Position numbers and translations under genes: made by a program
Part shown: one piece after another, positions 721-36,443 of the stretch
Layout: every line of letters begins with the position of its first letter
How positions within the stretch are numbered: position 1 is the stretch's first letter
NCBI GenBank assembly: GCA_965112155.1
Contig: OZ218117.1
DNA: 64,000 nt
Source of the DNA: Podarcis liolepis
Lineage: Eukaryota
Strand: one strand, 5' to 3'
The notes under the pieces: generated by a model
Databases searched by the model: none
Told to the model about the DNA's origin: nothing
What the model saw: only the letters and a program-made list of their open reading frames with translations

Positions 721-1760
721 ACCAACCCTTAAAACCCTGAAACCCAAAACCCTAAAAACTTAACACCCTAAACCCTAAAACCCCCAATCCCAAATCCCTA
801 AAACCCAAAACCCAAAAAACCCAGAAACCCAAACCTGATCCCCAAGCCGAACCAGTACCAAAACCAGAAGCCGAACCCAAACCCCAATCCCCTAAACCCT
901 GATCCAGAACCAAAACCGGAACCAGAGCCAGAACCCGAATCCGAGCCAGAACCAGAAGCAGAACCCGAGCCAGATCTCGAACCAGAGCCAGAACCAGAAC
1001 CACATCCAGAACCTGAACCAGAACCAGAACCCCAACCCTAAGCTGAACAACAACCCCAACCCTATCCATAGCAAAAACCCAAACCCGAACCAGAACAAGA
1101 ACCCCAACCGTAAACCGAACAAGAACCGAAAACCGAACCTGAACCAGAACCCTAACCCTGAACCCCAACCCTTACTCCAACCCCTACCCTAACCCTAACC
1201 CAAACCCAAGCTCCAAACAGCACCCAAACCCCAACACCAAGCCCAACACCAGCACCCTAAAATCGTAACCCTAACACCCCAGAACCGAAACCCCAACACC
1301 CTAAAACCGTATCCTTGAATCCCCAACCCAAATTACTCAATGCTAAATTCTTAAGCCACGCACCCGAATGCCCAATTTCCAAATCCCAAAATCAGAAGCC
1401 TGGAACCTAAAACCCTAAACATTAGCCACTAAAGAGGAGACCGAATTCCTTAAACCCATAATCTTAATTCCCAAAGCTTACATCCGGAACCTGAAAGCAA
1501 AATACTTGTTCAAAAAACCAAAGGAACCACACGTAATGCTCAAAACATAAAGTACGAAAGCCAAATTAAGAATCCTTTACCAGAAAACCCAAAGAACAGT
1601 ATTTTAAACAAGAAACCTAGAGTTCAGAACCCCAATCCCAAAGGAGAAAACCCAAAACATAAATCCCCAAATTCGGAAACCGAAAACCCAACCCTAACCC
1701 CATAATCCCCCAACCCCAGAACCCCAAATCCAAGTACACCAACCACCTCTCCTACAGCAA
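721..1760. repeat. Telomere-associated variant repeats (CCAGAA/CCGAAC/CCCAAA hexamers, decaying inward)
   Basis: Hexamer periodicity is clear at 850-1200 (ccagaaccagagccagaacc), with interspersed ccctaa up to ~1700. Confidence 0.75.
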
Positions 1761-2509
1761 TTAACCGAAATGCCGTAATGCACCATAGGAAACTTAAAGC
1801 CTAAGCAGACTGACCTCATCAAGCTCTAATGATCTCATCAAAATTTTGTTCCTACCTTTCTCAGGATGGGCGCTTCTCCTCCTCATCCATTCCGGTGATG
1901 AATGTGCGATGTAGACATTATCTATTATTGAAAGGAATGGAAGACTGATCAGGTGGGAGAAGGCAGAGCGTTCTCTCCTTCTTCCCCTTTTTCATCAAAG
2001 TGTGCTCAAGGAAGCGCACCCACTTCTGGATTCCTTGACTTCCCCACCCATCCCCTTTCCATGTCCATTTCGGCTAATGCACATAACCAAAGGGTGATAA
2101 GACATCCCCAAAAATCAACAAAAAGGGATCAATCGAAGCCGAAACATAGAACAAACATTGAACCCGAATGTTCACTGTTGCACGGTACAATCTGGAGTAT
2201 AAGGCGGTCACTCATTTATCGTATTGCTCTGCGTGACAGTCAGTGAAGATGGAAGCATATAACTTTTATGTGTCACATCCTAAATTATTGTAACTTTGCC
2301 ATCATGAAAATATCCAGGAGGCTCAAGACTACCCCATGCAAAACTGTAAAGTCATTTTAATAACAATTCACTGCACGTCACTTCGTTGGTTATTGGGGAT
2401 GAGGCAAAGCCGCACTTGGGTGGCATAAATGCATCAGGAGTGGGTTTTTTTTTTTAAATGGTATTTAACGTTAAATGTTAATATGTCTTCTACTTTGTTT
2501 CTCCCTTAC

Positions 2510-3800
2510 CTTCATGACTTTTCCTCCATCTCCCCTTCTCCCGTCTTGCGCAGTTTCCTCTTCCACCTTTTTAGAGCACGAATCCAGCAGAGCAGACCTG
2601 AGAAATATCATTAATATCAATCAATTACACAATATTCTAAAGAGGGGACCACATCAAAAAAAAAACATGTTTGTCTATCTTTGGCAGCTATGTAAAAAAG
2701 TATTAGTTCAGAAAGGAGTCGCCCATCTCTCTATTGTAAAAATGCTAGAAAATTTTTTTCCCCATCTTTTTTCTGGTTTAAAATTACCGATTTACTTCCC
2801 CAACAATCTTATAATGAAGCATCTAGCTAAAAGGAACCCCAAGGGTAATCAATTCCCACCCGCCGCAAGGGAGGAATCTCCGAAGAAACCACAATATTTT
2901 TAATTAAAATTTAAAAAATTATTAAAAAGTGATGGAATTGGCATCTTGAGAAATTAGCTTTCTACAGAAGCACTGCTTCAAGCAGTTTGCTATACATTAA
3001 GGGCGGACTGAGGGGGAAATCATTAACAATCTTCCCCTTTTTTTAAAAAAAAAAAAAAAATAAGTTGCCTGTTCACAGCCAATTACTCTGGATTTGCCCT
3101 CCCTCCCCCCCCCCCAAGTCCAATAGGTAATTAAAAGATAATGCTAAGGCTTAGTGGGGAAGAGGCCATTTCCCCCCTCTAGTTTGTTGTGATTTTTAAT
3201 ACTAAAAATAATGCAAGGTTTATTGAAGTTATGAAAGTATTACTGTTTCCCAGACACCATCAGAATATTTTTTAAAAAGCGACAAAACAAAACATACCAC
3301 AAACTTCCCCTACCCTTTCACATTTACAGTAATAAAATTAATGATATTATTAATCTATTACTCTTTTCCAGTCACAAATAGTATTTAAGAAAAGGGGAGC
3401 AAAAAATTCAAAATTCCCCTCACACTTTCATAGAAACACGCATTACAGTAAGAAAAAGTCTAAAATAAAGGACAATTATCATTTCTTCCTCTCCCTCAGC
3501 AGAATAACGAGTAATTCGACAAAACGTTTTAAATTACAGTCTTCCCTAAGCCCTCTTCTTAAATCAATGATAATAATAATTGTATTACATATCAGTTACA
3601 AATATAATTCAGGAAGGAATTGTTATAACCCATTATCATCATTTTCCCCCTTCTCCCCACAAAAGAGTCTTAAAATACCACCCAAACTCACGCGCTTCCT
3701 TGGATGAAATGGCGAAGGACCAGAGACGCTGAAGAGAAAAGCGCGCCGAAGGCTAGGACCCGCCCACAGCCTGAACTGGGATTGGCCGCACGGTCGACCT
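2510..3800 (-). ncRNA. Putative spliced non-coding transcript running toward the telomere (exon 1 ends 3692; exon 2510-2597)
   Basis: Donor at 3686-3691; exon 2510-2597 has acceptor tttctcAG and donor AAG/GTAAG; the same splice sites are kept in paralogous copies; no coherent ORF. Confidence 0.45.
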
Positions 3801-4145
3801 ATCGCAGTAGAATGCCATCAACCAACATGGCGGCGAAGGCGACGCTTCTCCCTTTCTTCCCCCCTTCTTCCACGTCCAGTTACCCTGTTCAAATATGGAC
3901 GCCCTAGGCAGCCCCTCTCTCTGCGCACGCGCCCAGCATTTTCACCACCAGCAATCTCGTCGGCGCTATGTCGGCCCTCGGGCCAATGTCTGGTAGGTCG
4001 ATGGGCGGGGCCATGCCTTGCGCGCCTTTTTTCGAGCGTTTTGAGCTTGGCGCGCACTTTCCCGCTTTTATTCCTCGCAGGTGTTTCTCAGCCGTTTCTC
4101 CTCAGCGGTTTCCCACGCCCTGGACGCCAAGTAAGTGTAGGCGCG
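3680..4145. promoter_or_regulatory. Subtelomeric CpG island, putative bidirectional promoter
   Basis: CpG-rich in an AT-rich background. GC box cccgccc ~3758; ATTGG (CCAAT) 3781; YY1-like aacatggcggc 3824-3834; NRF1-like tgcgcacgcgc 3922-3932. Minus-strand donor GC/GTGAGT (3686-3691) and plus-strand donor AA/GTAAGT (4131-4136). Confidence 0.7.
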
Positions 4146-5247
4146 TTTCTATTTCTGTAAATGATTATTAGCAGTACTGTTTAAATTATTTCCATTTTTA
4201 TTATTAGGATATGCGTGGCGGATTTTGCAGTTCAGTTTGTTACGTCCCTTTTTTAATATTTTGTGTTGAGCAGCTGGGGAATGGAATGGGAATAAATGAG
4301 GAACATCCTTCAAGTTTAAATTGTTATTATTCTAATTTCAATGGTTTTTATGCTAAAGGGGAGAGGGAAGTTTGTTGAAAAATTTTTTATTTTAAAATTT
4401 AAAACATACTCTGTTGGTTGCTTGCAAATAGAAATAATTCAATTTTAGGTAATGTATAATTATTATTGTTATTAACAATCAAACCCACCCAAGTGTGGCA
4501 CCCAAAGCCTAAACAGCATGGGATTTTTATTTCTCCCAATTAGTGGGAGAAGCAACTCTAGAGGAAAGAGCTGTGGTAATATTAACTATAACTATTAATT
4601 ATTATTTATGTACAGTAAATGATCAAGTGTTCATCGCTTTTCCTCTCAGGCTGTCTTAAACGTTTTGAGAACTGTACCTGAACAATGTATTGTACTGTTC
4701 TGCCACTGCTTCAACCTTTTTTTTTCAACCAGCAAATTCCTCCAGATCCCAGTTACACCAATATTATTATCATTATCAGTAGTATTAGTTCCAGTATTAG
4801 TATTATATCTTTTAAAACGAAATAAACCCTTTGTTGTACATTTGCGGATTCCATCCTTACTGCGTGATGGACCGAAAAAGCCTTGGGGTCCCTTCCAGCT
4901 AAATGCACCATATTAATAATATCCCAAGTAACTTAAGAAAAAAAAATTTATTGTTCGTTGGAAAGGGCTTCAGAAGGAAAAAACACTTTTCTTCCATTTC
5001 GTCGTCTGCTGGCTCCTATCCCCCTTTACCCAAGTTCTTTTTCCTCCATAGAAATATGTGCTGGAAATATTATATGCTTTAATTAATGTGGACCCCCCTT
5101 TTTTTTTTTGTATAGTAATTTTCATTATTGTTATTTCAAAGGTCCGCCCTGCTTGATTCCTATCCTGAAATGGAGGAGGAGGAAACTCTGCGTAACGATG
5201 GGAGAAGAGGAGGAGCAGGAAAAGTCACCTGCAGATGTGAAGGGAAG
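4050..5247 (+). ncRNA. Putative spliced non-coding transcript, inverted paralog of the minus-strand unit (exon 1 ends 4130; exon 5142-5247)
   Basis: Donor gtaagt 4131; exon 5142-5247 is homologous to 2510-2597 (reverse complement) and keeps AG/GT boundaries. Confidence 0.4.
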
Positions 5248-6029
5248 GTAAAGTTGGAAAATTATAAATAAGCATAAAACACTTAAGAGCATTCTCAAAC
5301 CAGCCCAGTCAGTCCCCATACATCCCACTGACCACCCAACCACAGCAGTACAGCACTTTAACAATACAGTAAAATAATTTAATTTATTTGAATGAGGAAG
5401 GCCAGCACCTCCAGGCTTCCCCCATGTTGGTGAGGTTATTCTCCTTTTCCTTTTCTTCTTTGGCTATCTGTAGGTGAAAAAGCAATGTGTGGAAAATTTA
5501 AGTTCTGCAGATAAACCATTGCTGTAACCTGATTCCAATGTTATTGCTCCAGAGCACAAACGTTTCATTCCCTAAAAAGAAAGGGAGAAATGCCTGTGCG
5601 TCTTTTGGGGCGTAGCGAGCAGGAGCTGATCCGGGAAAAGGGAGGGAATGGGATCCATGCAGTGGATTCCCTCCGCCCAGGCTCCCAGGGAACCATCTAA
5701 GCGGTAGGGGAGCTATTTCAGTAACGGGCATATAAAACTATGAAAATGAGCTTACAGATATCGAGAGTCCGACAGTGCTCAACCGCGTAGCCACTCTAAG
5801 GTGGATTACAAACAATTTTACTTTGGGGGGCAACCCTGAAGACTGTCTCCTTCTCTAGAACGTGTTTGATGGGCGTTTTCACTGCCTCGCCTTGTTCTAT
5901 CAGCCATAAGCATGTCTAGGCTTGGCTAGTCCAAGAGTATTGCAGTTGCTGTGACCATTTCTCCTGATCCTTCTTGAAAAAGTCTGGAGAGATCTACTGC
6001 AAGTCCCTCTTCCTCTGGCAGTAGTAATT

Positions 6030-9000
6030 CTCCCTCGAGGTCGCATTTTATTTTCCTATCAAGGTCTATTCCAGTTATGTCCACACGGGGGCAGTGCTTC
6101 TTTTCCTAACGAAGTCCATTCCAGTATTGGCCAGACACAGGAGGTCGCTGTTTGTATTTCTATTGATGTTTATTCCTGAAATGTCCACACGAGGGCACTA
6201 CTGTTTATTTTCCTATTGTGGTGTATTCCAGTATTGGCCACACAAGGGCACTGTGCACTGTTTGTTTTCCGATTGAGGTCTATTCCATTTATTCCCACAC
6301 GGCGTCACTTTTTAATCATCTATTGTGGTTTTATGGCCACACACACGAGATGTCTGTTTCTTTTTCTATGGAGCTGTATTACAGTAATGGCCACACTGTG
6401 TCACTGTTTATTCTCCTGTTGTTGTGAATTCCAGAAATGGCCACACACACGGGGTCTCTGTTTGTTAAACTATTGATGTCCTTTCCGTTAATTGCCGTAC
6501 TGTGTTACTGTTTACTTTCCTATTGATGTCTATTCCATAATGTTCCACACGAGGTAAATGTTTATTTTCCCCTAATGTGGTCTATTCCATTAATGGCCGC
6601 ACAGGTTCAGTGTTTGTTTTCCTATCGAGGTCTATTACACAAATGTCCGCACTATGTCGCTGTTTATATTCGTATTGAGATATATCCCAGTATTGTCACC
6701 ACGAGGTTGCTGTTTGTTATCCTATGGAGGTATATTCCATAAATTCCCACATGGGGTCAGTGATTGTTTTCCTATTGCGGTCTATTCCAAAAAAGGCCAC
6801 AGGAGGCCGATGTATATTTTCATGTTCTGGTCTATTCCAGTAATGGTTACACACACGGGTTAAGTGTTTGTTTTCCTATTTAGTTATATTCCAGCAATGG
6901 CCACACTGTGTCAGTGTTTGTTTTCCTATTGAGGTTTATTCCATAAGTGGCCTGACTATGTCACTGTTTATTTTCCTATTGATATCATTTCCAGTATTGT
7001 GTACTCAAGGTCGCTTTTTTGTATTTTTCGTAATGAGGATTATTGCAGTAATGGCCACAGGAGACCGCTGTTTATTTTCCTGTCGAGGTCCATTTCAGTA
7101 ATGGCCACACGATGGCACTGTTTACTTTACTATCGATGTCTAATGCACAAATGTCCACACTGTGCCACTGTCTATTTTCCAATTGATTTCTATTCCAGAA
7201 ATGGCTGAACGAGGGCCCTTTTTTTTTTCCTATTGAGGTGTGTTCCAGTATTGGCCACACACACGGGGTCGCTGTTTATTTTCCTACTGAGGTCAATTCT
7301 AGTAATGACCACACAAGGGCACTGTTTATTTTCCTAATGAGGTCTGCTCCAGTATTGGCCACACTCACAGGGACAATGTTTGTTTTCCTATTGAGGACAA
7401 TTTCACTAATGTCCATACGAGGTCATTGTCTATTTTCCTATATATATCTATTCTGGTACTCGCCGCACAAGGGCACTCTTTAATTTCCTATCAAGGTCTA
7501 CTGCAGTAATGGCCACACAGGGTCACTATTTATTTTACTAATGAGTTGTGTTCCAGGAATGGCCACATGGGGGCAGTGTTTGTTTTCCTATTGAGGTCTG
7601 TTCCAGTATTGGCCACACATTCAAAGTCACTATTTAATTTCCTATTGAGCTCGATCTCGGTATTTGCCATGGGAGGGCACTTTTTTTATCTCCTATTGAT
7701 GTCAATTCCAATATTGCCTACACGAGGGCTCAGCTTGTTTTCCTATTGAGGTATATCGCAGTACTGTAAACCCACACGAGGCCAGTATTTATTTTCCTAT
7801 TGAGGTCTTTTCCAGTATTGGCCACACACACGAACTCTGTGTTTATTTTCCTATCATTGTCTGTTGCAGTTATGTCTACACGCTCTAGGTCGCTGTTTCT
7901 TTTCCTATTGATGTCTATTATATTATTGGCCACACACAGGAGGTTGTTTTTTATTTTCCTATTGAGGTCTATTTCAGTATTTGCCGCAGGAGGTCAGTGT
8001 TTGTTTTCCTATTGAGGTGTATTCCAGTATTGGCCACACGGGGACACTGTTTGATTTACTATGGAGGTGTATTCAAATAATGGCCACACACACACTGTGT
8101 CACGGTTTGTTTTCCTATTGAGGTCTGTTCCATTAAGTGACACACGAGGTCAATGCTTATTTTCCTATCGAGGTCTATTCCTTCAATTGCCGCAAGGGGT
8201 CACTGTTTATTTTTCAATAGAGGCCTATTCCATAAATGGCCACAGGAGGTCAATGTTAAATTGAGGTCTATTTTGATAATGGGCACTCGAGTTCGCTGCT
8301 TATTTCCCTATGTATGTTTATTCTAGTAATGGCCACACGAGGGCACTGTTTATTCTCCTATTGAGTCGAGGTCTATTATGATAATGGCCACAGGAGGTTA
8401 CTGTTTGTTTTCCTATTGAGGTCTATTTCATTGATGGCCACACGAGTTCGCAGGATATTTTCATATTGTGGTCTATTACAATAATGGCCACACAATGGCA
8501 CTGTTTGTTTTCCTATTGCGGTCTATTCCAGAAATGGCAACGCTGGGTCAATGTCTATTTTCCTATTTATGTCCATTCCAGTATTGCGAACACGAGGTGT
8601 CTGTTGATTTTCCAATTTTGCTCTAAGCCAGCAGAGGCCGCACAAGGGCACTGTTTCTTTGCCTATTGTGGTCTATAACACTGATGGCCACACAGGGTCA
8701 GTTCAGTATTTATTTTCCTATTGAGGTTTATTCCAGAAATTGCCACGAGAGGGCACTGTTGGTTTCCCTATCGAGGTCTATTACAGAAATGGGCACACGA
8801 GGTCGCTTTTTATTTTCCTATTGAGGTCTATTTTACTATTGGCCACACGCAGCAGCTCGCTGTCTGTTTTCCTACTGAGGTCTATTCTGACAATGGGCAC
8901 ACGAGCTCACTGTTTATTTTCTTATCAAGGTCCACCTATTTAAGTATTTGCCGCACGAGGTCACTGTTTGTTCTCGTACTGATGTATATTGCAGTAATGT

Positions 9001-12000
9001 TCACCCGAGGCCACTGTTTAGTTTCCTATTGAAATTTATCCTTCCCTGGAATGACCACATGAGGTTCCTTTTTATTTCCAAATTGAGGTCTTTTCTGACA
9101 ATGTCCACACGAGGTCGCATTTAATTTTCCTATTGATGTATATCTATTCCGGTAATTCCCACACGGGGTCTTTGTTTATTTCCCAATTGAGGTCTATTCT
9201 GACAATGACCACACAAGGGCTCTGTTTGTTTTCCTATTGAGGTCTACTCTAGTAGTGAACACACGAGGTCGCTGTTTATATTCCTATTTAGGTCTATTCT
9301 GATAATGGGCACACAGGGTGTCTGATTATTTCCCATTTGAGGTCTATTCCTGTAAAGCACACAGGAGGGCACTGTCTATTTTGTTATTTAGGTCTATTTA
9401 TGTAATGACAACACGAGGACACTGTTTATTTTCCTATTGAGGTATATTCCAATAATGTCCACACGGGGTTAGTGTTTCTTTCCCTATTGAGATCTATTCC
9501 AGTAATTCCCACACGGGGTCACTGTTTGATTTCCTACTGAGGTGTATTCCAGTAATGTCCACACTGTGTCACTGTTTATTTTCCTATAGAGGTGTATTCA
9601 AGTAATGGCCACGCACACGGGGCCAGTGTTTGTTTTCCTATTGAGGTCTATTCCATTAATGGCCACACAAGGGCACCGTTTACTTTCCTATATATGTCTA
9701 TTCCAGTAATGGGCGGACAAGGGTACTGTCTACTGTCCTATTGAGGTCTGTTCCAGTATTGGCCACACACACGAGGTCACTATTTATTTTTCTATTGATG
9801 TCTATTATATTATTAGCCACACACAGGAGGTCCACAGACACTGTTTCATTTCCTATTGAGGTCTATTATATTACTAGTCACACACATGAGGTCGCTGTTT
9901 CTTTTCCTATTGAGGTGTATTCCAGTATTGGCCACACGGGGTCACTGTTTGATTTCCTATTGATGTCTATTCCTGCAATCTCCACACACACGAATTCGGT
10001 GTTCTGTTTCCTATAGAGGTCAATTCCAGTAATGACCAAACAAGGTCACTGTTTTGTTTCCTATTGAGGTGTATTCCAGTATTGGCCACACACACGAGTT
10101 CAGTGTTTATTTTCCCAATTGAGGTCTATTCCAAAAATGGTCACAGGAGGTCACTGTTCACTTTCCTATTGAGGTCTATTTCAGTAATGGGCACACGAGT
10201 TCGCTGTTTATTTCACTATATATGTCTATTCCAGTAATGGCCGCACGAGTTTGGTGTATATTTTCGTATTGAGGTGTATTCCAGTATTGAACACACGATG
10301 GCACTGTTTGTTTTTTTATCAAGGTCAATTCCAGTAATGGCCACACTGGGAAACTGTCTATTTTCCTATTGATGTCTATTCCAGTATTGGGCACACGAGG
10401 TAACTGTGTGTTCTCCTATTGAGGTCTATTCCACTTATGGCCGCATGAGGTCAGGTCAGTGTTTATTTTCCTATGGAGGTCTATTCCAGAAATGACCGCA
10501 GAAGGGCACTGTGTGTTCTCCTATTGAGGTCTATTCCACTTATGGCCGCATGAGGTCAGGTCAGTGTTTATTTTCCTATGGAGGTCTATTCCTGCAATGT
10601 CCGTACGAGGTCTTTTTTTTTTTTTTTTTCCTATTGAGGTCTATCACAGTATAGGCCACACGAGGTCACTGTGTGTTTTCCTATTGAAGTCTATCTATTC
10701 CAGTAATGACCGCACGAGATCGCAGTTTATTTCCCAATTGAGGTATATTCTGGCAATGGCCACGCAAGGGCTCTTTTTTTTTCCTATTGAGGTCTATCTA
10801 TTACAGTATTGGCCACAGGAGGACAGAGTCTATTTTCCTATTTTGGTCCATTTATGTAATGACCACACAAGGTCACTCTGCTTTCCTATTGAGGTCTGTT
10901 TCTTTTATGTCCACACGAGGGCACTGTTTGTTTTCCTATCGAGGTCTATTCTACTAATGGCCACACGAGGTCACTGTTTATATTCCTATTTAGGTCTATT
11001 CTGATAATGGGTACACAGGCTCAGTGTTTAGTTCCCAATTGAGGTCTATTCCTGTAATGGCCACAGGAGGGCACTGTCGACTTTCCTATTTAGGTCTATT
11101 TATGTAATGGCCACACGAGGTCACTGTTTGTTTTCCTATTGAGGTCTATGTATTCCAGAATTCGCCACACGAGGTCACTGTTTCTTTCCCAATTAAGGTC
11201 TATTCTGATGATGGCCACACGGGGTCACTGCTAGTTTTCCTATTGAGATCTATTCCAGTAATAGTCACACGAGGAGGTCACTGTTTGTTTTCCTATTGAA
11301 GTGTATGTATTCTGAAAATGGCCACACGAGGGCACTGTTTATTTTCCTATTGAGGTCTATGTATTCCAGAATTTGCCACACGAGGTCACTGTTTTTCCCC
11401 CCAATTGAGGTCTATTCTGATAATGGACACACAGGGTCACTGTTAGTTTTCCTATTGAAGTCTATCTGTAACAGAAATGGGCACACGAGGTCACTGTCTA
11501 TTCCAGAATTTGCCACACGAGGTCACTGTCTATTCCTGAAATGGCCACACGAGGTCACTGTTTATTTTCCTATTGAGGTCGATCTATTCCAGTAATGGCC
11601 ACACGGAGTCACTGTTTATTCTCCTACTGAGGTCTATTCCAATAATGGCCACACGAGGTCACTGTTTATTTTCATATTGTAGTCTATTTTAGTAATGCCC
11701 ACACAAGGTCACTGTTTATTTTACTATTGAAGTCTATCTATTCCGGCAATGGCCAGACGGGGTCACTGTTTATTTTCCTATTGTGGTCTGTTCCAGTATA
11801 CTCCACACAAGGGAGGTCACTGTTCATTTTCCGATTGAGGTCTATCTCTTCTAGTATTGGCTACACAATGGCACTGTTTATTTTCCTATTGAATTCAATT
11901 CCAGTAATGGTCACTCCAGGTCACTGTTTATTTTCCTACTGAAGTCTATCTATTCCTGTAATAACCACACGAGGTCACTGTTTATTTTCCTATTGAGGGA

Positions 12001-12380
12001 GGTCTATTACAGAAATGGCCACACAAGGTCACTGTTTATGTACCTATTGAGGTCTATCTATTCCAGAAATGGGCACACGGGGTCACTGTTTATTTTCCTA
12101 TTGAAGTCTATTCCGGCAATGGCCTCACGAGGTCACTGTTTATTTTCATATAGAAGTCTATTGTAGTAATGGCCGCACAAGGTTACTGTTTATTTTTCAA
12201 TTGAAGTCTATCTATTCCAGTAATGGCCACACGAGGGCACTGTTTAGTTTTCTATTGAATTTTATTCCAGTAGTGGCCGCACAAGGTCGCTGTTTATTCT
12301 CCTATTGCTTTATTTTCCATTAATGGCCAGACGAGGTCACTGCTTATTTTCCTTTCAATGTCTTTTCCAGAAATGGCTGC
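6030..12380 (+). repeat. 50-bp tandem repeat array (~125 copies) with a CTCF-like motif in each unit
   Basis: Consensus gaggtctattccagtaatggccacacgaggtcactgtttattttcctatt, read directly; copy number is length divided by 50. Confidence 0.93.
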
Positions 12381-12449
12381 AGCCTTAACCATATAGTATT
12401 TTTATTAATTTGAATTGGGTCAGGTAAACCTCCCCTTGGCTACAAAAAC

Positions 12450-13150
12450 ACCATAGTAAGTGGCTGTGATGATAATAATAATAATTAATTCATAATTTAT
12501 ATTTAATAAAGTGCAGATCTCCATTGCTTTCCCCCTCAGGCTGCCCTTAATGTATTGCAAACTGTACAGGAACAATGTATTGTGCAGATGAAGCACTGCT
12601 TGAGGCACTTGTTTTCTAACCAGGTAATTCCTCAAGATCCCAATTCCTCCACTTTTTATTAAATGCAGTTTCCTTGTGGTTCCTTCGCAGATTCCTCCCT
12701 TGCGGTGGGTTAGACTGGATGACCCTTGGGGTCCCTTCCAGGTGGATACACCATTATATGATTATTGGGAAAGGGATTCAGAAAGAAGAAAAGGTGAAAA
12801 GCAGATTTTTTCCAGTTTGTCGTCTCCTGGCTCCTTTCCCACTTGATTCATTCTTCCACTGCAATCGGGGCTGGACATATTCTATGTCCGCTTGAACCGG
12901 GACCCCTCTTTCCCTTCTTGTGAAAATAATTGACATTATAGATTATTATTAGGTGTGAATTCCTGCTCTGAGGAAGAGGAGGAAGCTTCGCCCGATGAAG
13001 TGAGAAGAGGAGATGGAGGAAAAGTCAGCTGCAGGCATAAAGGTAAAAGGGAAAAAATAGAAATAGGAATTGGCATATAACACTTAAGAACAGTTTTAAA
13101 CAACCCCAGTCCTGATATAACACGGCCCCCCCTATCCAGCACAGTACAGT
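12450..13150 (+). other. Promoterless third copy of the non-coding exon/intron module (exon 12954-13042)
   Basis: Colinear with 4560-5350 and with the reverse complement of 35.6-36.35 kb; tAG/ and AAG/GTAAA boundaries retained. Confidence 0.65.
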
Positions 13151-13529
13151 ATATTCCTTCACTTAATCCGCAAACAATGTGCTAATTCTTGGTCCAATGT
13201 ACATTATACTATTGTTGTGTTGATAAAATGAGGTAAAGCTCATTCATATGCTTTGGAATCCAAATGAGATAAATTAAAAGTTTGAAAGGGGAAATAAATT
13301 GAGAGCCATATTCAAATTCCTTCGTGGAAATAACTAGCACCTATAAATTATCATGAATTCTATACCAGCACTGACCACACGAGGGCAGTTTATTCTTCTG
13401 TCAATGTCTTTTTGAGTAATAGCCACACGATGGCACTGTTTACTTTCCTATCGATGTCAACACATAAATGGCAGGGACTGTTTTGGATCTTGTGGATAGA
13501 AATCATGCAGGAGCCTTTATCCGAAGGCA

Positions 13530-13660
13530 GCCCTGTTTAGGGAAGCTTTAAATGTTTTATTGGTTGTTTTATTTTACTGTTTTGTTGAAATCCGCCCAGA
13601 GTGGCTGGGGAAACCCAGCCAGATGGGCAGGATATAAATAACAGCTTATTATTATTATTC
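13530..13660 (+). mobile_element. L2-type 3' tail fragment (squamate repeat)
   Basis: ccctgtttagggaagct...ccgcccagagtggctggggaaacccagccagatgggc ending in (tta)n; a reverse copy lies at ~40500-40600. Family assignment is from recall. Confidence 0.55.
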
Positions 13661-14668
13661 ACGAGGGGGTTCATACCTTCAGCAACTTTTTTCCGAGATG
13701 TACCTGTGAACAAATTATAGGATCCTGATAGCAGCCTCCTTTGTTGCATTGCCTGCATGTTGTTGTGTTGATGCTTTTGGTGGCCTCCTTATATGAGCTA
13801 AAATTTTGCTTATATACTGCAAAATACACCTTTTGACCAAATACATGCTTGCTTCTTCCTGCTGCTAGTGGCCTAAATTCATACCTGCTTTTTGTTTCCT
13901 TGCACAGGTCACCGAAAGGCAGCTTTTGGATATGATACATACAGAACAAGAACATCATCCAGAACTGTCTCCCTCAGCAGGTAGGCCATCGTTCCCTCTT
14001 TATTTTTTGGAATATCCTAGGTGCTGGCCAGGGTGTTATCTGTGGCCTGACTGTTTGAAACATGAGCGCACAATAAGTGGAGCCCCAAACTCTGCTTGGA
14101 GGCCCAAACTCCGTTTGTAGGAGATGGGAGCAAATGTATTGGTGGGGAGGGTCTGCATGGAAAGAAAGCTCCAGCTCCCAAAGATCAAGAAGACCCTTGA
14201 ACAGGAATAAAACTCACTTCCTAAGACTCAAGGCCAAACAGATAAAATATTCCCGATAAAATTCCATTCCTGAGCAGTTGGAACTGAGTGCTTAGAGGTA
14301 GATTTGGGGCAGAACTCAAAGTGGTGAAATTCATTTTTCTGATTCCATTTTGAAAGGAAATGCTCCCTTTGAAGGGAGAACTAGTGTGTGGTGGGAGAGA
14401 AGGTGGCTTCAAGTTTGGTTAGCTATTTGTCTTCTCCAAACCAGAACTGGTGTTAATGTGAAGAATCCTGAAAGGACACCTAATGTGAAATGTGGATTAA
14501 TTTGACTCAGCCAGGAAACTTGGGGCCAGGCCATCAGCATTGCCAGGGTCTTTGTTGAAGGGCAGGACTTTGGAAAGTGGTTCAGAGCCAATGGAATTGG
14601 TCAGATAGTTAAGGATTTCTAGTGCTGCCCCCCCCCACTCCCGCTTGGCTACATTAATGGGCCTGGTA

Positions 14669-15022
14669 CAGTGGTTCCCCGCAAGACGAATGCCTCGCAA
14701 GATGGAAAACCCGCTAGACAAAATGGTTTTTCAATTTCGTGGGCGCTTCACAGGACAAATTTCCCTATGTGCTTGCTTTGCAAGACAAAAACATCTTGCG
14801 AGTCTCACCATTTCCCCCCCCCAGGTTCCCCCCCCCCCTTTTTCTAAACCACTAATTGCCTTTTATCAGCTTAGCCGCTAACCCTTTAATAGCCACTAAG
14901 CCGCTAAATCGCTAATAGCGCTAAACCGCTTAGCCGCTAATGGGGTTGCTTCGCAAGACGATAAAACCGCCAGGCAAAGAGAATCTCGGAACAGATTCTT
15001 CTCATCTTGCCAGGCACCACTG
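14669..15022. mobile_element. Tc1/mariner (Tigger-like) non-autonomous DNA transposon
   Basis: TA|CAGTGGT...gcaaga at the left end and tcttgc...ACCACTG|TA at the right: terminal inverted repeats with TA target duplication. Confidence 0.75.
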
Positions 15023-16369
15023 TATTAATTTTTGATCCATTGAGATAAAGTTCATTTGTATGCTTTGGAATCCAAATGAAATAAATTAACAGTTTGAAAG
15101 GGGTAATAATTTTAGAGCCATATTCCAATTCCTGCGTGGAAGTAACTTACACCTAGAAATTATCCTGAATTCTATTCCAGCACTGACCACATGGGATCAC
15201 TGTTTACTTTCCTATAGATGTTTATTCCAGTAATGGCCACACGGGGTCACTGTTTACTTTAGTATTGATTTCTATTACAGGAATGCTTTTTAAGCTTTAA
15301 AAAGTGTGCATGGGTGCTTAAAATGAATAACTCAACAAAGCAGCAGAGAGTAGCAATTGAAACAGACCCCCCCCATCAGCATTGATCGAATGATCTCTAG
15401 TGCAAATGGAAGGATACATATATTTTAGAATATCTTCTGTATGTCTGCAGCATGAGGTTCTTGTGCCTGTGGCCTTTCTTGCACGGAGTAGGTCTCTGTG
15501 TGTGTTTGTGAGTTTTCTTATTGTTCTGTTCTGGTTCTTTCAGAAGAGCTGCCTCAGAGGCTAGTAGTTGTTAGGGTGTGAAACCTAAGACGCTGGCAAG
15601 TTAGCAATGTCATGTGACTTTAAGTAGTCAAGCTCGTTAAGTTGTTAAGATGCTCAGTATATAAAGAGTGTTTGTTTCCTCTGCCTGTGGGGCGTGAAGC
15701 AAAAAATGTCTGAAAGCTCCGGAGGTGTTTCTGTTATCTTTCTGCGATAAACCTGTCTTTGGAAAGACAGGCTTCCCTGTGTCGTTATTTCTTTGCTGCT
15801 GAGACTCTGAAGCTTGTACTGCAACAAGAATCTCTGCACTGGACTTAATGAATACTCTGCAAAGAGAGCTGTTGCTGGTGGCACAGCGGAAGTGTTTACT
15901 GGACCAGTACAAACTCTCTTAGTAGTTGGCCAAGGTAGATAAAAATAAAAGACAAAAGCTGTATTTTCTTCTGTCGTTTCTTCCCAGATGGGCTGTTCTG
16001 CAGATCAGCTGGCACAACTGGTCTGGCACAACTGGACTGCCCAAGACTGCCATTGGGGCACAGAGCAGGTGAGGAGCATCAGCATGACTGTCTAGTTTTT
16101 AATTGGTGATGATTTTTTTTTATATGTACACAAATATCCCAGAAGCACGACTGCCAGACACTTCTCTTGACACCTGTCTTCTTTTATATATATATAATGA
16201 CCTTTATTATTGATTTAGTGTTAGTTACATACATTATATACACATAATATATCACACTTTACATTTACACTTGGTCTTGAGAGCTGACTTCCCTCCTTCC
16301 TTCTTCCAGCTTCTTTATTTCAGCTTCAATCTCAACTTTGGATGTCCTCTCCCCTGGTGTTTTTGTTTC

Positions 16370-16965
16370 GACACACATATATATACAGTACATACATACA
16401 CACACATATACAGTACATACATACACACACACATGCATACAGACTTATGTNNNNNNNNNNNNNNNNNNNNNNNNNNNNNNNNNNNNNNNNNNNNNNNNNN
16501 NNNNNNNNNNNNNNNNNNNNNNNNNNNNNNNNNNNNNNNNNNNNNNNNNNNNNNNNNNNNNNNNNNNNNNNNNNNNNNNNNNNNNNNNNNNNNNNNNNCA
16601 CACACATNNNNNNNNNNNNNNNNNNNNNNNNNNNNNNNNNNNNNNNNNNNNNNNNNNNNNNNNNNNNNNNNNNNNNNNNNNNNNNNNNNNNNNNNNNNNN
16701 NNNNNNNNNNNNNNNNNNNNNNNNNNNNNNNNNNNNNNNNNNNNNNNNNNNNNNNNNNNNNNNNNNNNNNNNNNNNNNNNNCACATATACAGTACACACA
16801 TATCCACATGCATGCATACATATATATATACAGTACACACACATATACAGTACACACACAAACATATATACACACACACACACATGGGATACACAGTACA
16901 TAAATACACAGTACACACAAACATATACACAGTACAAATACATACACACACACAAAAACACATAT

Positions 16966-17006
<41 letters not shown>

Positions 17007-17025
17007 CAATATATATATATATATG
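16370..17025. repeat. Compound (CA)n/(TA)n microsatellite with assembly gaps
   Basis: Direct inspection; N-runs at 16451-16599 and 16608-16781. Confidence 0.95.
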
Positions 17026-17069
17026 AATCTCGGGCAGCTCTGATATAGATATCTATATATATATATCTA

Positions 17070-17210
17070 TATCAGAGCTGCTTGAGGTCCCAGCTCACAA
17101 AAGACCAGCGCCAGATTGTTGTTGTATACAAAAGTCTTTATTAAAGTTCAGTTTCACTTCCACAGGTGTAGCGTGCAGCTCTACATCTGAAACTCTAGAC
17201 CACCAAAGCT
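17070..17210 (-). mobile_element. Partial LTR (3' part), inverted relative to 18632-19122
   Basis: Reverse-complement match to ~18983-19122, including the aataaagact signal. Confidence 0.75.
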
Positions 17211-17212
17211 CC

Positions 17213-17368
17213 GTCAAGATCAGCTTAGCGTCGGCAAGACAACCACAAACCAACGGACAAGCGGAGAGGGTCAACGCCATCATGCAGCGGTACCTGCAAT
17301 GCTACGAGGACCAACAGCCCTCAACCCGGGTGGACTGCTCACCGCTAGCCAAGTTTGCCTACAACAAC
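17213..17368 (+). pseudogene. Ty3/Gypsy integrase fragment
   Basis: Translates VKISLASARQPQTNGQAERVNAIMQRYLQCYEDQQPSTRVDCSPLAKFAYNN, matching the HPQTNGQxERxN...LPLAEFAYNN integrase core motif. Confidence 0.85.
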
Positions 17369-18631
17369 AGGAACACTACAACAACATGAACAAGTTTGCC
17401 TACAACAACACTACGCCAAAGACAAGTTCCATGTACTCTTCCCACACAGACTGACACTGGCAGATTATTTTGATGCCTGTCTTTTCACACCCACACTTTC
17501 AGCCAGCACATTGCAGGGGTTCTCATCAGCTGGGGAAACAGCACCAGAAACAAGCTCCCCAGAGGGATCACTCTCAGGGTTTGGCACAGACCACTCTTCT
17601 TGGTGGGGCAATCAACTGGAGGTGGGATGGAGCAGGGAACTGCTGAGGGGACCCTTACACGCAGCATCACCTGAGGTAACAAGGGGGGGGGGTTGGACAT
17701 GGATGTGTTGGGGGAGGATCCTGGGTTCAAGCACAGATGGAAGCAGAGGAGATCAACACCAACGAGCCCATTATGGGCTGGCCAGCTGCACACCAGGTAA
17801 GAATAACGGGATCCTGCACTCACCCACACAGCACCCAGAACACATACCCAAAAGGGGGGGTAAGGGGGGCTTCAAGGGGGGGTGGATGTCAAGGGCTCAG
17901 GGATGGGAGCACGGGAGAGAGGGAATGGAGAGTAGAGGGGAAGAATCTGAGGGTGGTGTAGGGGGGGGGTTATGGCAGTGATCCAAGAGGTTCCATGCAC
18001 TGCTCCAGCAAATCAGGAGATTCCCAGGAGGTGCCAATAGTCAGGGCAAGGGAGGTCCCAGGGGGGACACACCAGGAACAGGGGGCCAGCGGGGACTCCC
18101 AAAGCAGTGGGAGATCAGGACCAGTTTCCCCACCAGAGTGTGGGGGGGGGAGCCCCATGTGTCAGGGCCAGTGGAGTAGAAAGGGGGGCCAGCCACACTT
18201 GGTGTGGCATCTGGGGGGGGCACTCGCTGCCTCTGGAGTCGCAGAAGAGCCTTGGGCACAGGCTGTAGCAGAGCCGCATGTCTCGCGGAACTGGTGAGCT
18301 GTGCACGCATCTGGGCTGAAGACATCTGGCAGGCAGTGGCTCTCAGCACTCACAGCAGCCCCAGTGTGTCAGGGCTATGGAGGATGTGCCAAGCAGCCCC
18401 TCTTCACAGCTCCACTGCAGCTGCTGCCGGGCCATGTTGCATTTTCCTCACCTCTCTGCCCCCCCTCCTTCTCCAGGAGAGCAGCATCGTTTGGGCAGCA
18501 GCACCAGCGGCAGCTCGCTTCAGATCACCTGACGTGGCAGGTTAGGGGTTTGGGGGCCCAAATTACTTGCCTTGCCCCAGGTGCTAACAACTCACACTAT
18601 ACCGCTGGTCAGGGCCAGTGTCTCCTCCAGC

Positions 18632-19122
18632 TGTGAGAGAATATGAGTCAGGACTGACCACACCTATCGGAGAGTGGGAGAATGGAGGGGAGGTCAGGTC
18701 CAGCTAGCCCCCCCCCCCCAAGGGGGAAACTGACAGGAGCAGGGTGAGGGTCAGGAGGAAGGTTGCCGGCTGGGCGTGTACGCCAAGTTCAAATGTACAG
18801 GCACATGAGACAGCAGAAAACCCAGATTGGGAACCAGGCCCTAAAGCCCACCGGAGACAGGGGGAAGACTCAGGGGTGAGACCCCAGCAGACAGGCGGAA
18901 CCAGAGGAGGAAGGAGCAAAGGAAGAGGTGGAGCAAGGCTAGAGTCTTAAAATGGTGTCTGGGGGAAGGAGATTCAGACACAGCTTCAGCGGTCTAGAGT
19001 TTAAGACTTAGAGCTGCACACTACAGCTGTGGAAGCAAAACTGAACTTCAATAAAGACTTCTGTATATATCAACGAACTGGAGTTGCTCCTTTGTAAGCT
19101 GGGACCTCAAGCAGCTCTGACA
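18632..19122 (+). mobile_element. LTR, probably of the Gypsy remnant
   Basis: TG...CA ends, AATAAA at 19050; the 3' end abuts the tandem-module sequence sharply. The 5' boundary is less certain. Confidence 0.6.
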
Positions 19123-20202
19123 ATAGGGTTTCTATTTTTGGAGAGACCATGGGAAAGTGCAATCTCCCTGACCATCGAAGAATACAGACTGTTCTCTGGG
19201 AGGTTACCAGGGTTAGGGGTGTGAGGAGAGGAAAAGAGACACTTCAACCAGCTGTTTGAGCAGAAATCCACCTTGAGAGAAGGCAGGCTGTGCCTGTGGA
19301 AAGGACCAGGCCTTGTGGACGTGTAGGGACTGTGCGATCTTACCCATTTAGAGAGATAGCTAGGTATTTCCCACCGTTCCCTTTGCTCCTTGCTGCTAAG
19401 AAGCGTTTCCAGTGGATGGAAGTGGACTTAGGCAGATGTAGCATTCAACATGAAGAAATAAAGCAGAGCCCATGCAGGCAACCCATCTTTTCCCACTGCT
19501 GCCTTGCCTCTTTTTCTTCTCTTTCCTTTGGCTGCCACGCTGCTGGGTCAATCAGGTGTTTGGTTAAAGGAGCTGTTTGCATCTTGTGCCCAAAGATCCC
19601 CTTTCCCCCTCTTGCCCCACAAGGCAGCAGCAGGAAGGCCCCTCTTCTCCCTCCCTGTCAGGCAAAACCTCCCTCTTCCTTCTCCTCCCCCATTTTGGGA
19701 GAAGGAATTCAGCACAGCCCATAGAGACCTGAGAAATAACGGGGGGGGGGGGGGGCTTTTTTCCAGGAAAACAGAAAGAGGGGTCTGCGTAAAAACAGGC
19801 ACAGGAACTGCCAAACCCTTTCCAAAGAATAATGATGGTCTATAAACCTCTGGAAGGGACCCCAAGGGTCATCCAGTCTAACCTGCTGCATCAAAGGAGT
19901 CCCTTACGGGGAACAATCCTGCAACCTTGGTTATGCAGCAAATGTCACCCTCTTAAATGGCACTTTGAAGCCTGCTTCAGGGATGCACACCTCTCCTGCA
20001 GCTGCAAGTTCAGCCAGGAAGCAAACATGGCCATCCATTATTCTTGACTGGAAACAGAGGAAGCGCTCCTTACATCCTCCCTGGGAGCATTTCTGCAGTC
20101 AGGGGGTGGCCCTGACCCTGACCCCTAAGCCTAACCCTCTCCCTAACCCCAACCCTAACCCCTAGACTTACAACAGCAAACTTTCAACTTGTGACCTTAG
20201 TC

Positions 20203-20548
20203 AAAGGTAAGGGCAAAGGGACCCCTGACCATTACGTCCAGTGTTGCCAGACTCTGGGGTTGCGGCCCTCATCTCGCTTTATTGGCAAAAGAAGCTGGCA
20301 TATAGCTTCCAGGTCATGTGGCCAGCATGTCTATGCCGCTTCTGGCAAACCAGAGCAGCACACAGAAACACCGGTTACCTTCCCGCCAGAGCGGGACCGA
20401 TTTATCTCCTTGCACCTTGTGCTTTCCAACTGCTAGGTTGGCAGAAGCAAGGACCCAGCAACGGGAACTCAGCCCGTCGCGGGGCTTCGAACCATCAATC
20501 GGCAAGTCCTAGGCTCTGTGGTTTAACCCACAGCGCCACCCACATCCC
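20203..20548 (-). mobile_element. Sauria SINE (lacertid type)
   Basis: Minus strand starts ggga...gtggcgctgtgggttaaaccacagagcctagg and ends with an (acctt)-type tail. Confidence 0.85.
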
Positions 20549-22332
20549 GTAACTTAAAGGAATGCTATTTCTGTTTGTTCCTTCTGAAGAACATTCCAAA
20601 AAATCAAATGATACTACATTTATATCTACATCTGGAAAGGACCCCAAAGGTCATCCAGCCCAACCCACAGCAAGGCAGGAATATGCAGGAGAATAACCAC
20701 TAACCTTGCTTCTGCTGTCAATGTTGCCCTATCAAATGGCACTTTTAAGGCAATTTAAACTGCCTCCAGAAAAGGGAAAAACCATGAGCCTGCACTAAGG
20801 GAATGCTCATGAGTATATAAAGTGCCTTTCTTTAGAACACCCCTCTTAACTTTGCAAACTGCTGCAAATTTCCAAAATGCACACATACGTGCCAGTATTT
20901 CTCAATCTAAAGGATTCAATTGGCTTTTGGTTTTGGCCCCCCTTGCAGGGGATCAGCCCACTTAGTCTCCTGCCATTGGGGCTCCCAGCCTAGATGCATG
21001 GCAGGGGACAGTCTAAAATCTTTGCTTCGCCCTTGCTGTGGAGCACATTGCACAGTCGATTTTTAAGGACTGACACACACAAACACCCCCCCTAAACTTT
21101 ATTGAGACATTACTAAATAATAGGGTTTCTATTTTTGGAGCGACCGTGGGAAAATGCAATCTCCCTAAACATCGAAGAATAGAGACTGCTCTCTGGGAGG
21201 TTGCCAGGGTTATGGGTGAGGATAAAAAGAGACACTTCAACCAGCTGTTTGAGCTGAAATCCACCTTGGCAGAAGGCAGGCTACGCCTGTGGAAAGGACC
21301 AGGCCTTCTGGAGGTGTAGGGACTGTGCGGTCTTACCGATTTAGAGAGATAGCTGGGTATTTCCCACCATTCACTTTGCTCCTTGCTGCTCAGAATCTTC
21401 TCCAGTGGATGGAAGTGGACTTCGGCAGATGCACCTGCCTTTGGTAACTTCATGGAGATGTCTGGGAGCTGCCTTGCCTCTTTTTCTTCTTTCCTTTGGC
21501 GGCCACGCTGCTGGGAGAATCAGGTGTTTGCTTAAAGGAGCTGTCTGGATCTTCTGCCCCAAGATACCCTTTCCCCCTCTCACCCCACAAGACGGCAGCA
21601 GGAAGGCCCTGGCACTGGCACCTTTGAGGCACTGGCATCTGGTCTCAAAAGATCCCCTCTTCTCCCTCCCTCTGTCCGGCGAAACTGCCTAGTCCTCCCC
21701 CTTTTGGGGAGAAGGAATTCAGCACAGCCCTTTGAGACCTGAGAAATATCAGGGGGGTGGATGATTTCAAGAACTAAAAGAGGGGTCCGTGTAAAAAGAG
21801 GCACAGGATCTGCCAAGCTCAAATGAATGTGCAAGGAATAATATCCTCACAGGAAGCAAGGGGACTAGCCCATCAAACAACTAACTGTAAAGAACGCTAT
21901 TTCTCTTTCTTCTTTCTGTAGCCCTTTCCAAAGAAAAACGTGGGTATATAAAGCTCTGGAAGGGACCCCAAAGGTCATCCAGTCCAACCCGCTGCATCGC
22001 AGGAACATTCAGGACTCCCTTACGGGGAACAATCCCGCAACCTTGGTGGTGAAGCAAATGTTCCCCTCTTAAATGGCACTTTGAAGGCTGCTTAAGTATA
22101 ATTCAGGCATCCCCACCTCTCCTGCAGCTGCAAGTTCAGCCAGTAAGCAAACATAGCCATCCACTATTCTTCACTAGAAACAGAGAAAGCTCCGCTTATG
22201 TCCTCCCTGGGAGCATTTCAACAGTCAGGGGAGACCCTGACCCCTAAGCCTGACCCCAAGCCTCTCCCTAACCCCCTACCCTAACAACAACCCAAACCCC
22301 AACCCCTAGACTTACAACAGCAGACTTACAAC

Positions 22333-25300: not shown

Positions 25301-26490
25301 CCTAGGTGGTTGTCACCCTTGGAGGCTAAGGCGGTGAAAAAGCTTAATAAGGAAGCCAAAGGGCCAAAGTATTGGGAAATTTGAGAACAAAATGGAGACA
25401 ATTGGAAGTTACAGAGTCACGAGAAAATAAAATCCAAAGTGCGAGCTTGGCTCCGTTCATATCAGATAATGGAGGTGTACAAACAAGACAGGAAAATTGG
25501 CTTCCGGGTGGAGAAATCAAAATTAGAAACTGAATGGTTAGAACCCAATACTAAGAATTTGTCAAGAATGTATAACTTGCTGCTGAAATGGAATACACGA
25601 GATAAAACAGTTTAATCAGCTAGGATGAAGTGGGCACAGGACATGGGTCATAACATTATGTTTGCTGACTGGGAATGGTTCTGGAACACCGGGATAAAAT
25701 TTACGGCATGTAATGCCTTAAAGGAAAATATTATGAAAATGATCTATAGGGGGTACATGACCCCCGTCAAGCTAGCAAAAATCTATCCTTTGCCCGATAA
25801 TAAGTGTTGGAAATGTAAAGAAACGGAAGGTACCTTCTATCACCTTTGGTGGACATGCCCAAAGATTAAGGCTTTTTGGGAGATAATATAGAATGAAATG
25901 AAAAAGGTACTTAAATGTACCTTCCCTAAGAAACCAGAGGCCTTTCTCCTGGGCATGGTCGGCCAATGGGTGTTGAAGAAAGATAGAACTCTTTTGATGT
26001 ATGCTACAACAGCAGCAAGAAGACTCATTGCAATGTATTGGAAGACACAAGAGCTACCCACCCTGGAAGAGGGGCAGAGGAAGGGGATGGACTATAGGAC
26101 ATTGGCTGAGATGACGGGCAGAATCCGTGATCAGGGGAAAGAGACGGCGGAAGAAGATGGGAAGAAATTTAAAATCTATCTTAAGAACTATTATAAAATG
26201 GATGAATGTTAAAATGTCGACGTTTGGAGAAAAAAAAGGAGATTACAGCGACATATGATTAAGTTAAAGACCAGAATAAGAAAAAATATTTGAGATAAAA
26301 TTATTTAGAATTTGCTGAAATAATTTTGGAAATGGGGATGTAGGAAGGGGAGGTTTGTGGGAGTCTGAGAAGTGAGGGATATGGAAAAAAAAGTTATGAA
26401 ATTATACATGTTTGTATGTCTTTTTATTTGTTTGTATTGTTTAAAATATTTTGTAAAACCAAACCAAAAAAAAATTTTTTTTTAAAAAAT
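22333..26490 (+). mobile_element. 5'-truncated, decayed L1-clade (L1/Tx1-like) LINE; ORF2 remnant 22525-26212
   Basis: APE endonuclease motifs (SWNCNG, LQESH, GDMNG, RIDQ), RT motifs (YRPISLLN, DAEKAF, GTRQGCPISP, FADD) and C-terminal CWKC..HLWWTC. Many stops and frameshifts; A-rich tail ~26455-26490. Confidence 0.93.
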
Positions 26491-27225
26491 ATATATCTAT
26501 CTTGGAAGGGACCTCAAGAGTCATCCAGCCCAAGACGCTGCTCGGCAAGAATATGCAGAATAACCACTAACCTTGGTTGTGCCGTCAGTCTTGCCCTATG
26601 AAAGGGCACTTTTCAGGCACTTTAAACTGCAGCTGCAAGTTGCGCCATGAAGCACCCCTTGCCACCCCCTTTCGCGGACTGGGAGTGGAGGAAGTGCTGC
26701 TGACAGTCTCCCCAGGAGCTTTTCAACAGTCAGGAGGAGACCAGAAGCCTTCGGGGGGATTGTGCATCTGCTAAGAACATTTAACACTATTTCTGTTTCT
26801 TCTCTCTGAAGCCCTTTCCAAAGAATAATGCTGGTAAATAAACCTCTGGAAGAGACCCCAATGGTATCCAGTCCAACCCGCTGCAACGCAGAAACATGCA
26901 GTTCCTTAGGGGGAACAATCCTGCAACCATGGTGGTGCAGCAAACGTTGCCCTCTTAAATGGCACTTTGAAAGCTACTTAGGTATAGTTCAGGGATCCCC
27001 ACCTCTCCTACAGCTGCAAGTTCAGCCATGAAGCAAACATGGCCATGCACTATTCTGGACTGGAAACAGAGGAAGCACTGCTTACATCCTCCCTGGGAGC
27101 ATTTCAACAGTCAGGGGGAGGCCCTGATCCTGACCCCTAAGCCTAACCCCAAGCCTCTCCCTAAACCCACCCCTAACAAGGACGCTAGACTTACAGCAGC
27201 AGACTTACAACTTCTGACCTTTGTC

Positions 27226-34244: not shown

Positions 34245-34453
34245 GTTCAGGAAGCAAACATAGCCATCCACTATTCTTCACTGGAAACAGAGAAAGCTCT
34301 GCTTACATCCTCCCTGGGAGCATTTCAACAGTCAGGGGAGACCCTGACCCCGAAGCCTAACCCCAAGCCTCTCCCTAACCCCCTACCCTAACAACAACCC
34401 AAACCCAAACCCCTAGACTTACAACAGCAGACTTACAACTTCTGACCTTTGTC

Positions 34454-36408: not shown

Positions 36409-36443
<35 letters not shown>

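Follow-up and report, generated by a model that had tools for sequence, protein, structure and literature searches.

The left end of contig OZ218117.1 of the lizard Podarcis liolepis (GenBank assembly GCA_965112155.1) carries a long tandem repeat of a CTCF-like unit beside a telomere, and it raises the question of whether such a repeat is a boundary made of CTCF sites or a minisatellite whose unit resembles one. We analyzed a stretch of 64,000 nucleotides, hereafter the window, in which a first-pass annotation had described positions 6030 to 12380 as a unidirectional array of about 125 CTCF-like sites, and had proposed that it may separate telomeric chromatin from the first gene as a large CTCF boundary. 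Our analysis favors, with a probability of about 65%, a different explanation: the array is a neutral, lineage-restricted subtelomeric minisatellite, and its CTCF-like core was inherited from the founder unit.

The array was delimited with Tandem Repeats Finder (TRF) and by wrap-around alignment to the TRF-derived consensus, and it occupies the following interval:

6020-12388, plus strand: minisatellite array, in which 122 full units (6044-12340) are bounded by a partial unit at either end.

TRF reported a period of 50 bp over approximately 6047-12377, with about 100-113 copies and 66-67% matches, and the wrap-around alignment gave unit lengths of 50 bp in 69 of the 122 full units and of 54 bp in 33. 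The four bases added in the longer units were mostly CACA within the CCACAC tract or a duplication of TCTA in GGTCTATTCC. The consensus unit was CTGTTTATTTTCCTATTGAGGTCTATTCCAGTAATGGCCACACGAGGTCA, with a GC content of 41%. The tandem array is therefore real, and the count of 122 full units of 50 or 54 bp agrees with the size and unit number that had been annotated. The mean pairwise identity among units was 73%, and units agreed best with the consensus in the right third of the array (86.6%) and less well on the left (81.8%). TRF also returned periods of 104, 154 and 204, but a higher-order repeat was ruled out, since the identity between units stayed flat at about 73% at all lags from 1 to 12; this flat profile also indicates little recent homogenization. 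The sole clearly recent event within the array was found at 10404-10561, where a two-unit block of 105 bp is duplicated; no difference separates the unit at 10404 from that at 10509 (100% identity), and both carry a GGTCAGGTCAG expansion at the 3' end.

The related genomes showed how the repeat behaves over time. Half of the sampled words of the window were present in organism A and 5-20% in organisms B, C and D, and contigs of the latter three aligned to particular positions within the array with 90-100% identity. In organism D, the summed contig depth on the array, a measure that reflects copy number only roughly, was 1,600-21,000 in most bins versus about 250 on the unique flank (approximately 10-80x), whereas in B and C the array depth was about that of the flank. 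This contrast indicates copy-number turnover typical of satellites, and points to a satellite that is common to related species and amplified in one of them. The raw DNA reads of run X7 covered only the transposon parts of the window, at 90-95% identity, and none fell on the array or the unique flank. Thus, the features of a subtelomeric minisatellite were all observed, i.e., a head-to-tail unit of 10-100 bp, a location a few kb from the terminal tract and turnover between related genomes; the units have diverged to about 73% pairwise identity without homogenization, and copy number varies widely among related species.

To quantify the resemblance to CTCF sites, units were scored against a reconstruction of the position weight matrix (PWM) JASPAR MA0139.1, whose column sums of 908-913 and consensus TGGCCACCAGGGGGCGCTA look right. 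The thresholds were p<=1e-4, the lenient default, and p<1e-6, used for confident CTCF calls (FIMO). The consensus core TGGCCACACGAGGTCACTG reached 13.0 of a possible 26.8 bits, with p ~1e-5, and it was penalized at position 8 (A, -1.2 bits) and, most strongly, at positions 9 (C, -4.3 bits) and 14 (T, -1.75 bits). At position 9, C is present in 11 of 912 matrix sites (1.2%) and A in 93%, and at position 14, T is present in 71 of 910 sites and G in 85%. Judged over the most informative core positions (A9, G10, GG at 13-14 and C15), the consensus unit does not qualify as a CTCF site. A telomere-to-telomere (T2T) survey applied a cut-off of p<1e-6 to CTCF motif calls and found that about 80% of such matches were true sites (bioRxiv 10.64898/2026.07.18.739380); the consensus, at p ~1e-5, fails this standard for confident calls.

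The raw scan of the plus strand yielded 45 matches at p<=1e-4 and 19 at p<=1e-5, when about 0.6 and 0.06 were expected by chance, and the core pattern with up to three mismatches occurred 54 times, against 0.01 expected. When the 122 full units were taken one by one, three scored at p<=1e-6, 16 between 1e-6 and 1e-5, 25 between 1e-5 and 1e-4, 37 between 1e-4 and 1e-3, and 41 worse, so that cumulatively 44/122 reached p<=1e-4, 19/122 reached 1e-5 and 3/122 reached 1e-6. The only units in the last class were those at 8740, 11058 and 7560, and the first of these holds the top match:

8740-8758, plus strand: highest-scoring CTCF-like match of the array, TTGCCACGAGAGGGCACTG, with 20.4 bits and p 8e-8.

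The four example sites cited in the first-pass annotation were all found where it had placed them, and the score of the consensus confirmed a measurable resemblance; nonetheless, its figure of about 125 CTCF-like sites was too high, because 64% of the units fell below the lenient threshold. Its list of variants that CTCF tolerates was also selective, as the change from CCAC to CCGC costs 3.4 bits and common damaging variants had been omitted. A CACA insertion within the core was present in 12 units, whose mean score was -1.0 bits; the G at position 10, the most informative of the matrix, was lost in 33 of the 122 units, and C4 was lost in 22. We estimate that around 0.25% of random genomic 50-mers in the window would match the CTCF matrix as well as the consensus does, and therefore a chance match in a founder unit would not be rare across the many tandem repeats of a genome. 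Outside the satellite, matrix matches of 13.8-15.2 bits were present at 42839 and 63337 on the plus strand and at 48474 and 55779 on the minus strand; the latter two would be convergent with the array if the array were bound.

The evidence that carries the neutral explanation comes from the way the units have decayed. Conservation per column was high over the whole unit, with the top columns in the T-rich half, and the mean conservation was 83.3% in the 19 matrix columns, 84.3% in the other 31 columns and 82.7% in the 14 core columns. Matrix information content and unit conservation gave a Spearman coefficient of -0.29, which was not significant, and with base class controlled, G/C columns were conserved at 0.831 within the motif versus 0.789 outside (P=0.19). 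Purifying constraint that follows the information content of the matrix, as expected of a CTCF site, was therefore not found in the array. This comparison had been put forward together with the CTCF proposal as one that could overturn it, and its outcome speaks against that proposal. The commonest variant was the best alternative of the matrix in just 7 of 19 columns (P=0.46); an apparent 6 of 8 in the 3' half was a post hoc observation and carries no weight here. The differences between species showed no depletion in the motif, with 14 of 28 lying in motif columns versus 10.6 expected (28 array rows among 40 of 355), a small sample in which some differences are probably between paralogous copies. 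We then simulated neutral decay by introducing into the consensus, for every unit, as many randomly positioned substitutions as that unit carries. The simulation generated 42 +/- 5 units at p<=1e-4, compared with 45 by raw scan and 52 when units were aligned and insertions ignored, indicating that the number of lenient matches is that expected of neutral decay. The CTCF proposal is supported in part: the core resembles a CTCF site and a partial block lies upstream of it, but motif-linked conservation was not seen. The core and the upstream block appear to decay in step with the remainder of the unit, and the array is therefore probably not a selected CTCF boundary.

The surroundings of the array suggest how it could have arisen. 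The relevant features are:

12-521: assembly gap next to the telomere-type tract.
524-1310, unstranded: degenerate telomere-type tract of CCCTAA variants, at the left chromosome end.
2380-4167: direct copy of the module at 35400-37290, including the CpG island at 3650-4150.
3650-4150, unstranded: CpG-island promoter copy with a GC content of 0.58 and a CpG observed/expected ratio (o/e) of 1.02, on the telomere side of the array.
4283-5529, minus strand: inverted copy A, partial and 66-73% identical to the 35400-37290 module, left of the array, with an exon-like piece at ~5140-5250.
12381-13131, minus strand: inverted copy B, partial and 74-76% identical to that module, abutting the right end of the array, with an exon-like piece at ~12950-13050.
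13354-13471, plus strand: short array 1, ~2.5 units of the array repeat, with a 130-bp flank at 13220-13353.
15166-15288, plus strand: short array 2, ~2.5 units of the array repeat, with a homologous left flank at 15032-15165.

The telomere lies on the left, as had been annotated, with degenerate CCCTAA repeats from 524 to about 1310, and the array starts about 4.7 kb inward of this tract and about 5 kb from the chromosome end. Both short arrays resemble a seed of the sort that could have expanded into the large array. The region of short array 2 is 82% identical to 13220-13458, and the left flank common to both is low-copy in the contigs of the related organisms. According to the neutral explanation, slippage or unequal exchange would have enlarged a short proto-array, similar to those at 13.35 and 15.17 kb, into the present array, and this expansion would have taken place inside the zone of inverted and direct segmental duplications beside the telomere. 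The core TGGCCACACGAGGTCACTG and the partial upstream block would derive from the founder unit and would have been copied along with it. Some of the better-matching units may bind CTCF opportunistically.

Several observations weigh against a neutral origin. The consensus core has the p ~1e-5 score given above, and the array matches are all on the plus strand, with none on the minus strand at p<=1e-4. In addition, GGTCTATTCC agrees with the published upstream consensus, approximately CAGCTGTTCC, at 6 of 9 or 6 of 10 positions, and is followed by a 5-bp linker before TGGCC; the linker columns, 30-34, were the least conserved block of the unit (0.756). Units at p<=1e-5 numbered 22 when aligned (19 by raw scan) versus 12.5 +/- 3.3 in the simulation. 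Substitutions in motif columns were milder for the matrix, with a mean of -2.25 bits versus -2.90 +/- 0.09 under the neutral spectrum of the other columns, and permutation of the alternative-base scores within columns gave P=0.0016 for this difference. Unit-specific sequence of the array has been kept since the split from related species. Moreover, conservation between units is a weak gauge of selection, as units can be lost or replaced without trace.

Several of these signals need qualification. The modest excess at p<=1e-5 is mainly due to GGGCAC, a T>G variant. Because variants are inherited in linked haplotypes (for example, CACTGTGTCA in 7 units and a TTCTGAC-type in 10-13), the substitution counts are not independent and the P values are too small. 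The bias of substitutions toward matrix-tolerated bases, which is the sole sign of constraint, is for this reason confounded and amounts to a hint. As for the single orientation, all matches do lie on the plus strand with the telomere on the left, as the first-pass annotation had indicated; this is automatic because the repeats are head-to-tail, and the term unidirectional adds no evidence. The upstream block was also present as described, in the form of a partial motif: TATTCC ends 5 bp before TGGCC in the consensus unit, at the published spacing, and its CC columns were only 71-76% conserved. The upstream motif, assigned to zinc fingers 9-11, resembles CAGCTGTTCC and typically has a linker of 5 bp to the core (PMC12885311), and this spacing has been identified as the stronger arrangement of upstream motif and core (bioRxiv 10.64898/2026.01.05.696797). 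The same work found that AT-rich flanks favor CTCF binding and that a PWM-based method predicts the measured CTCF affinity poorly, with a rho of 0.33.

CTCF sites follow the convergent rule, and cohesin contacts CTCF at its N-terminus. A plus-strand motif beside a left telomere would consequently retain cohesin arriving from the chromosome body, if CTCF were bound. This orientation is part of the case for the array as a unidirectional anchor of CTCF and cohesin under selection, comparable in a reptile to the human 61-mers, that would stop cohesin and insulate the telomere and the adjacent CpG-island promoter. The proposal would also account for a 13.0-bit consensus with 44 units at p<=1e-4, all on the plus strand, for the partial upstream motif at 5-bp spacing (PMC12885311; bioRxiv 10.64898/2026.01.05.696797), for the AT-rich flanks, favorable to binding according to the latter source, for the substitutions biased to matrix-tolerated bases and the units at p<=1e-5 in excess of the simulation, and for a CpG island between array and telomere; a precedent exists in the human 61-mer arrays, whose 2-7 copies are bound by CTCF and cohesin beside promoters of telomeric repeat-containing RNA (TERRA) (PMC4032850, PMC5727389). 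We nonetheless consider it unlikely. The motif shows no extra conservation, two informative core positions of the consensus are mismatched (C at 9, T at 14), p<1e-6 is attained by only 3 units and 64% lie under the lenient threshold, CACA insertions and losses of G10 are common, and copy number changes freely between related organisms. Furthermore, the significance tests treat linked haplotypes as independent events, and with a rho of 0.33 between PWM-based prediction and affinity (bioRxiv 10.64898/2026.01.05.696797), a match is weak evidence either way. Nor does the array sit immediately between the telomere and the first gene, which the proposed boundary would separate: the CpG island at 3650-4150 is on the telomere side of the array, and about 25 kb of duplicated blocks and fragments of long interspersed nuclear elements (LINEs) separate the array from the first clear gene, which is ZFR-like.

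Opportunistic binding, in which a minority of units (GGGCAC and CAGGAGG types) would be occupied in some tissues through clustered weak sites, with no maintenance and no boundary role, is equally improbable as the whole account of the array. It fits the absence of a constraint signal and the 19 units at p<=1e-5, of which six are at p ~1e-6 or lower and three of these below 1e-6, and CTCF motifs with some binding have been reported in several primate satellites (bioRxiv 10.64898/2026.07.18.739380). However, the array has a CpG o/e of 0.50 and its core CpG has been lost by G>A in 21 units, suggesting germline methylation, which would limit access. Slightly less credible is a CTCF/cohesin super-anchor, in which some 40-120 same-orientation sites of low to moderate affinity, with upstream motifs at 5 bp, would halt extrusion before the telomere and shield the CpG-island promoter; if true, the human 61-mer CTCF repeats would have an analogue of independent origin and much greater size. 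Finally, a role other than CTCF binding, either as nuclear-receptor half-sites or as an intronic repeat of a transcript from the 3.9-kb CpG island that would splice 5140-5250 to 12950-13050, is very hard to credit, because, even though the mismatching T at CTCF position 14 completes a perfect AGGTCA half-site, the plus strand holds 31 AGGTCA and 47 AGGTCT against none on the minus strand, and the array lies between duplicated exon-like pieces that have GT donor sites, any 50-bp unit matches some short factor motif, AGGTCA is intact in just 31/122 units, no RNA run among those listed holds the region, and neither an Rfam family nor a tRNA is present within the window.

The neutral minisatellite thus remains our preferred explanation, and the rest of the locus was inspected for its organization. 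Between the CCCTAA tract and unique sequence, a CCAGAA-type hexamer array was detected at 904-1164, with about 41 copies and also a 24-bp period, and it is possibly a mutated derivative of the telomere repeat. The direct (2380-4167) and inverted (4283-5529) copies of the module form a palindrome around ~4170-4283 with one CpG island (3650-4150) and mirror-image exon-like pieces at ~2515-2657 on the minus strand and ~5083-5227 on the plus strand; this arrangement, 2380-5529, looks like a fold-back duplication at a chromosome end. The source module at 35400-37290 adjoins the ZFR-like gene, which has its CpG island at 38.3-39.4 kb and a zf-met zinc-finger exon at ~46.9 kb. Very high-copy interspersed elements were found at 13476-13660 and 14660-15020, with a summed contig depth of 1e5-1e6 in three organisms, and X7 raw reads map to them too. 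The first is inserted directly after the short array at 13354-13471, and some contigs join 14730 straight to 14940, skipping 209 bases. Farther inward, at least four copies of a block of several hundred to ~800 bp, 70-95% identical, were present (19100-22350, 26480-31050 and 34250-35050), and one of them contains an interstitial CCCTAA run of 8.5 copies at 20110-20161. The LINE fragments at 22459-24311 include an endonuclease-like open reading frame (ORF), with a weak Exo_endo_phos match below the curated cut-off, and a reverse-transcriptase ORF with an RVT_1 match (E 3e-11). A search of the window for Rfam families, tRNAs or a tRNA-derived origin found none, and three 16-mers of the array unit had no match in published papers.

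Were CTCF truly present on the array, a reptile would have independently evolved a CTCF boundary that divides telomere from chromosome body, on a far larger scale, and the number of weak same-direction sites needed to stop cohesin could be tested in nature. As a neutral repeat, the array has cautionary value: tandem repetition turns the motif match of one founder into matches along the whole array, and their common orientation is uninformative. The checks that discriminate are whether conservation tracks the information content of the matrix and whether the number of matches exceeds that of neutral decay, and the array fails both. The locus also records how a chromosome end was assembled, with palindromic and tandem copies of a promoter module and a minisatellite that probably expanded from a seed of two or three units.

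Comparison with known systems places the array among ordinary repeats. Vertebrate subtelomeric minisatellites likewise have head-to-tail units of 10-100 bp, lie in subtelomeric segmental duplications, and show length variants and variable copy number; the lizard array differs in that its units are unusually diverged for 6 kb of repeat (73% pairwise), without higher-order structure, and in that its core has a CTCF match at p ~1e-5. Satellites of squamates derived from short interspersed nuclear elements (SINEs), with units of 67-145 nt from Squam1-3 SINEs, are also tandem repeats, likely subtelomeric and variable in copy number between species, but their units are longer than 50 bp and few have been found in lacertids (PMC10702118). 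The CTCF-motif-rich satellites of primates, i.e., gamma satellite, some alpha-satellite higher-order repeats and DXZ4-type macrosatellites (bioRxiv 10.64898/2026.07.18.739380; PMC3491370), share with the array a CTCF-type motif in every tandem unit and a single orientation. In contrast, their units are GC-rich and 171 bp-3 kb long, their motifs are called at p<1e-6, and some members have evidence of binding, whereas the lizard unit is 50 bp long with 41% GC, and nearly all units fall short of p<1e-6. Human subtelomeric 61-mer arrays are described as 2-7 copies bound by CTCF and cohesin beside the CpG-rich 29/37-mer TERRA promoters (Deng et al. 2012 as cited in PMC4032850; PMC5727389). As far as those descriptions go, both systems have tandem units of 50-61 bp a few kb from the telomere, near a CpG-rich promoter-like element and with a CTCF-type sequence in each unit; the human arrays have demonstrated CTCF/cohesin binding in 2-7 copies, and the lizard array has about 122 copies. 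Compared by description, they also differ in that the lizard consensus mismatches two informative core positions, and in the lizard the CpG island lies on the telomere side of the array. The human 61-mer array is the closest functional parallel; structurally, the lizard array is an ordinary subtelomeric minisatellite.

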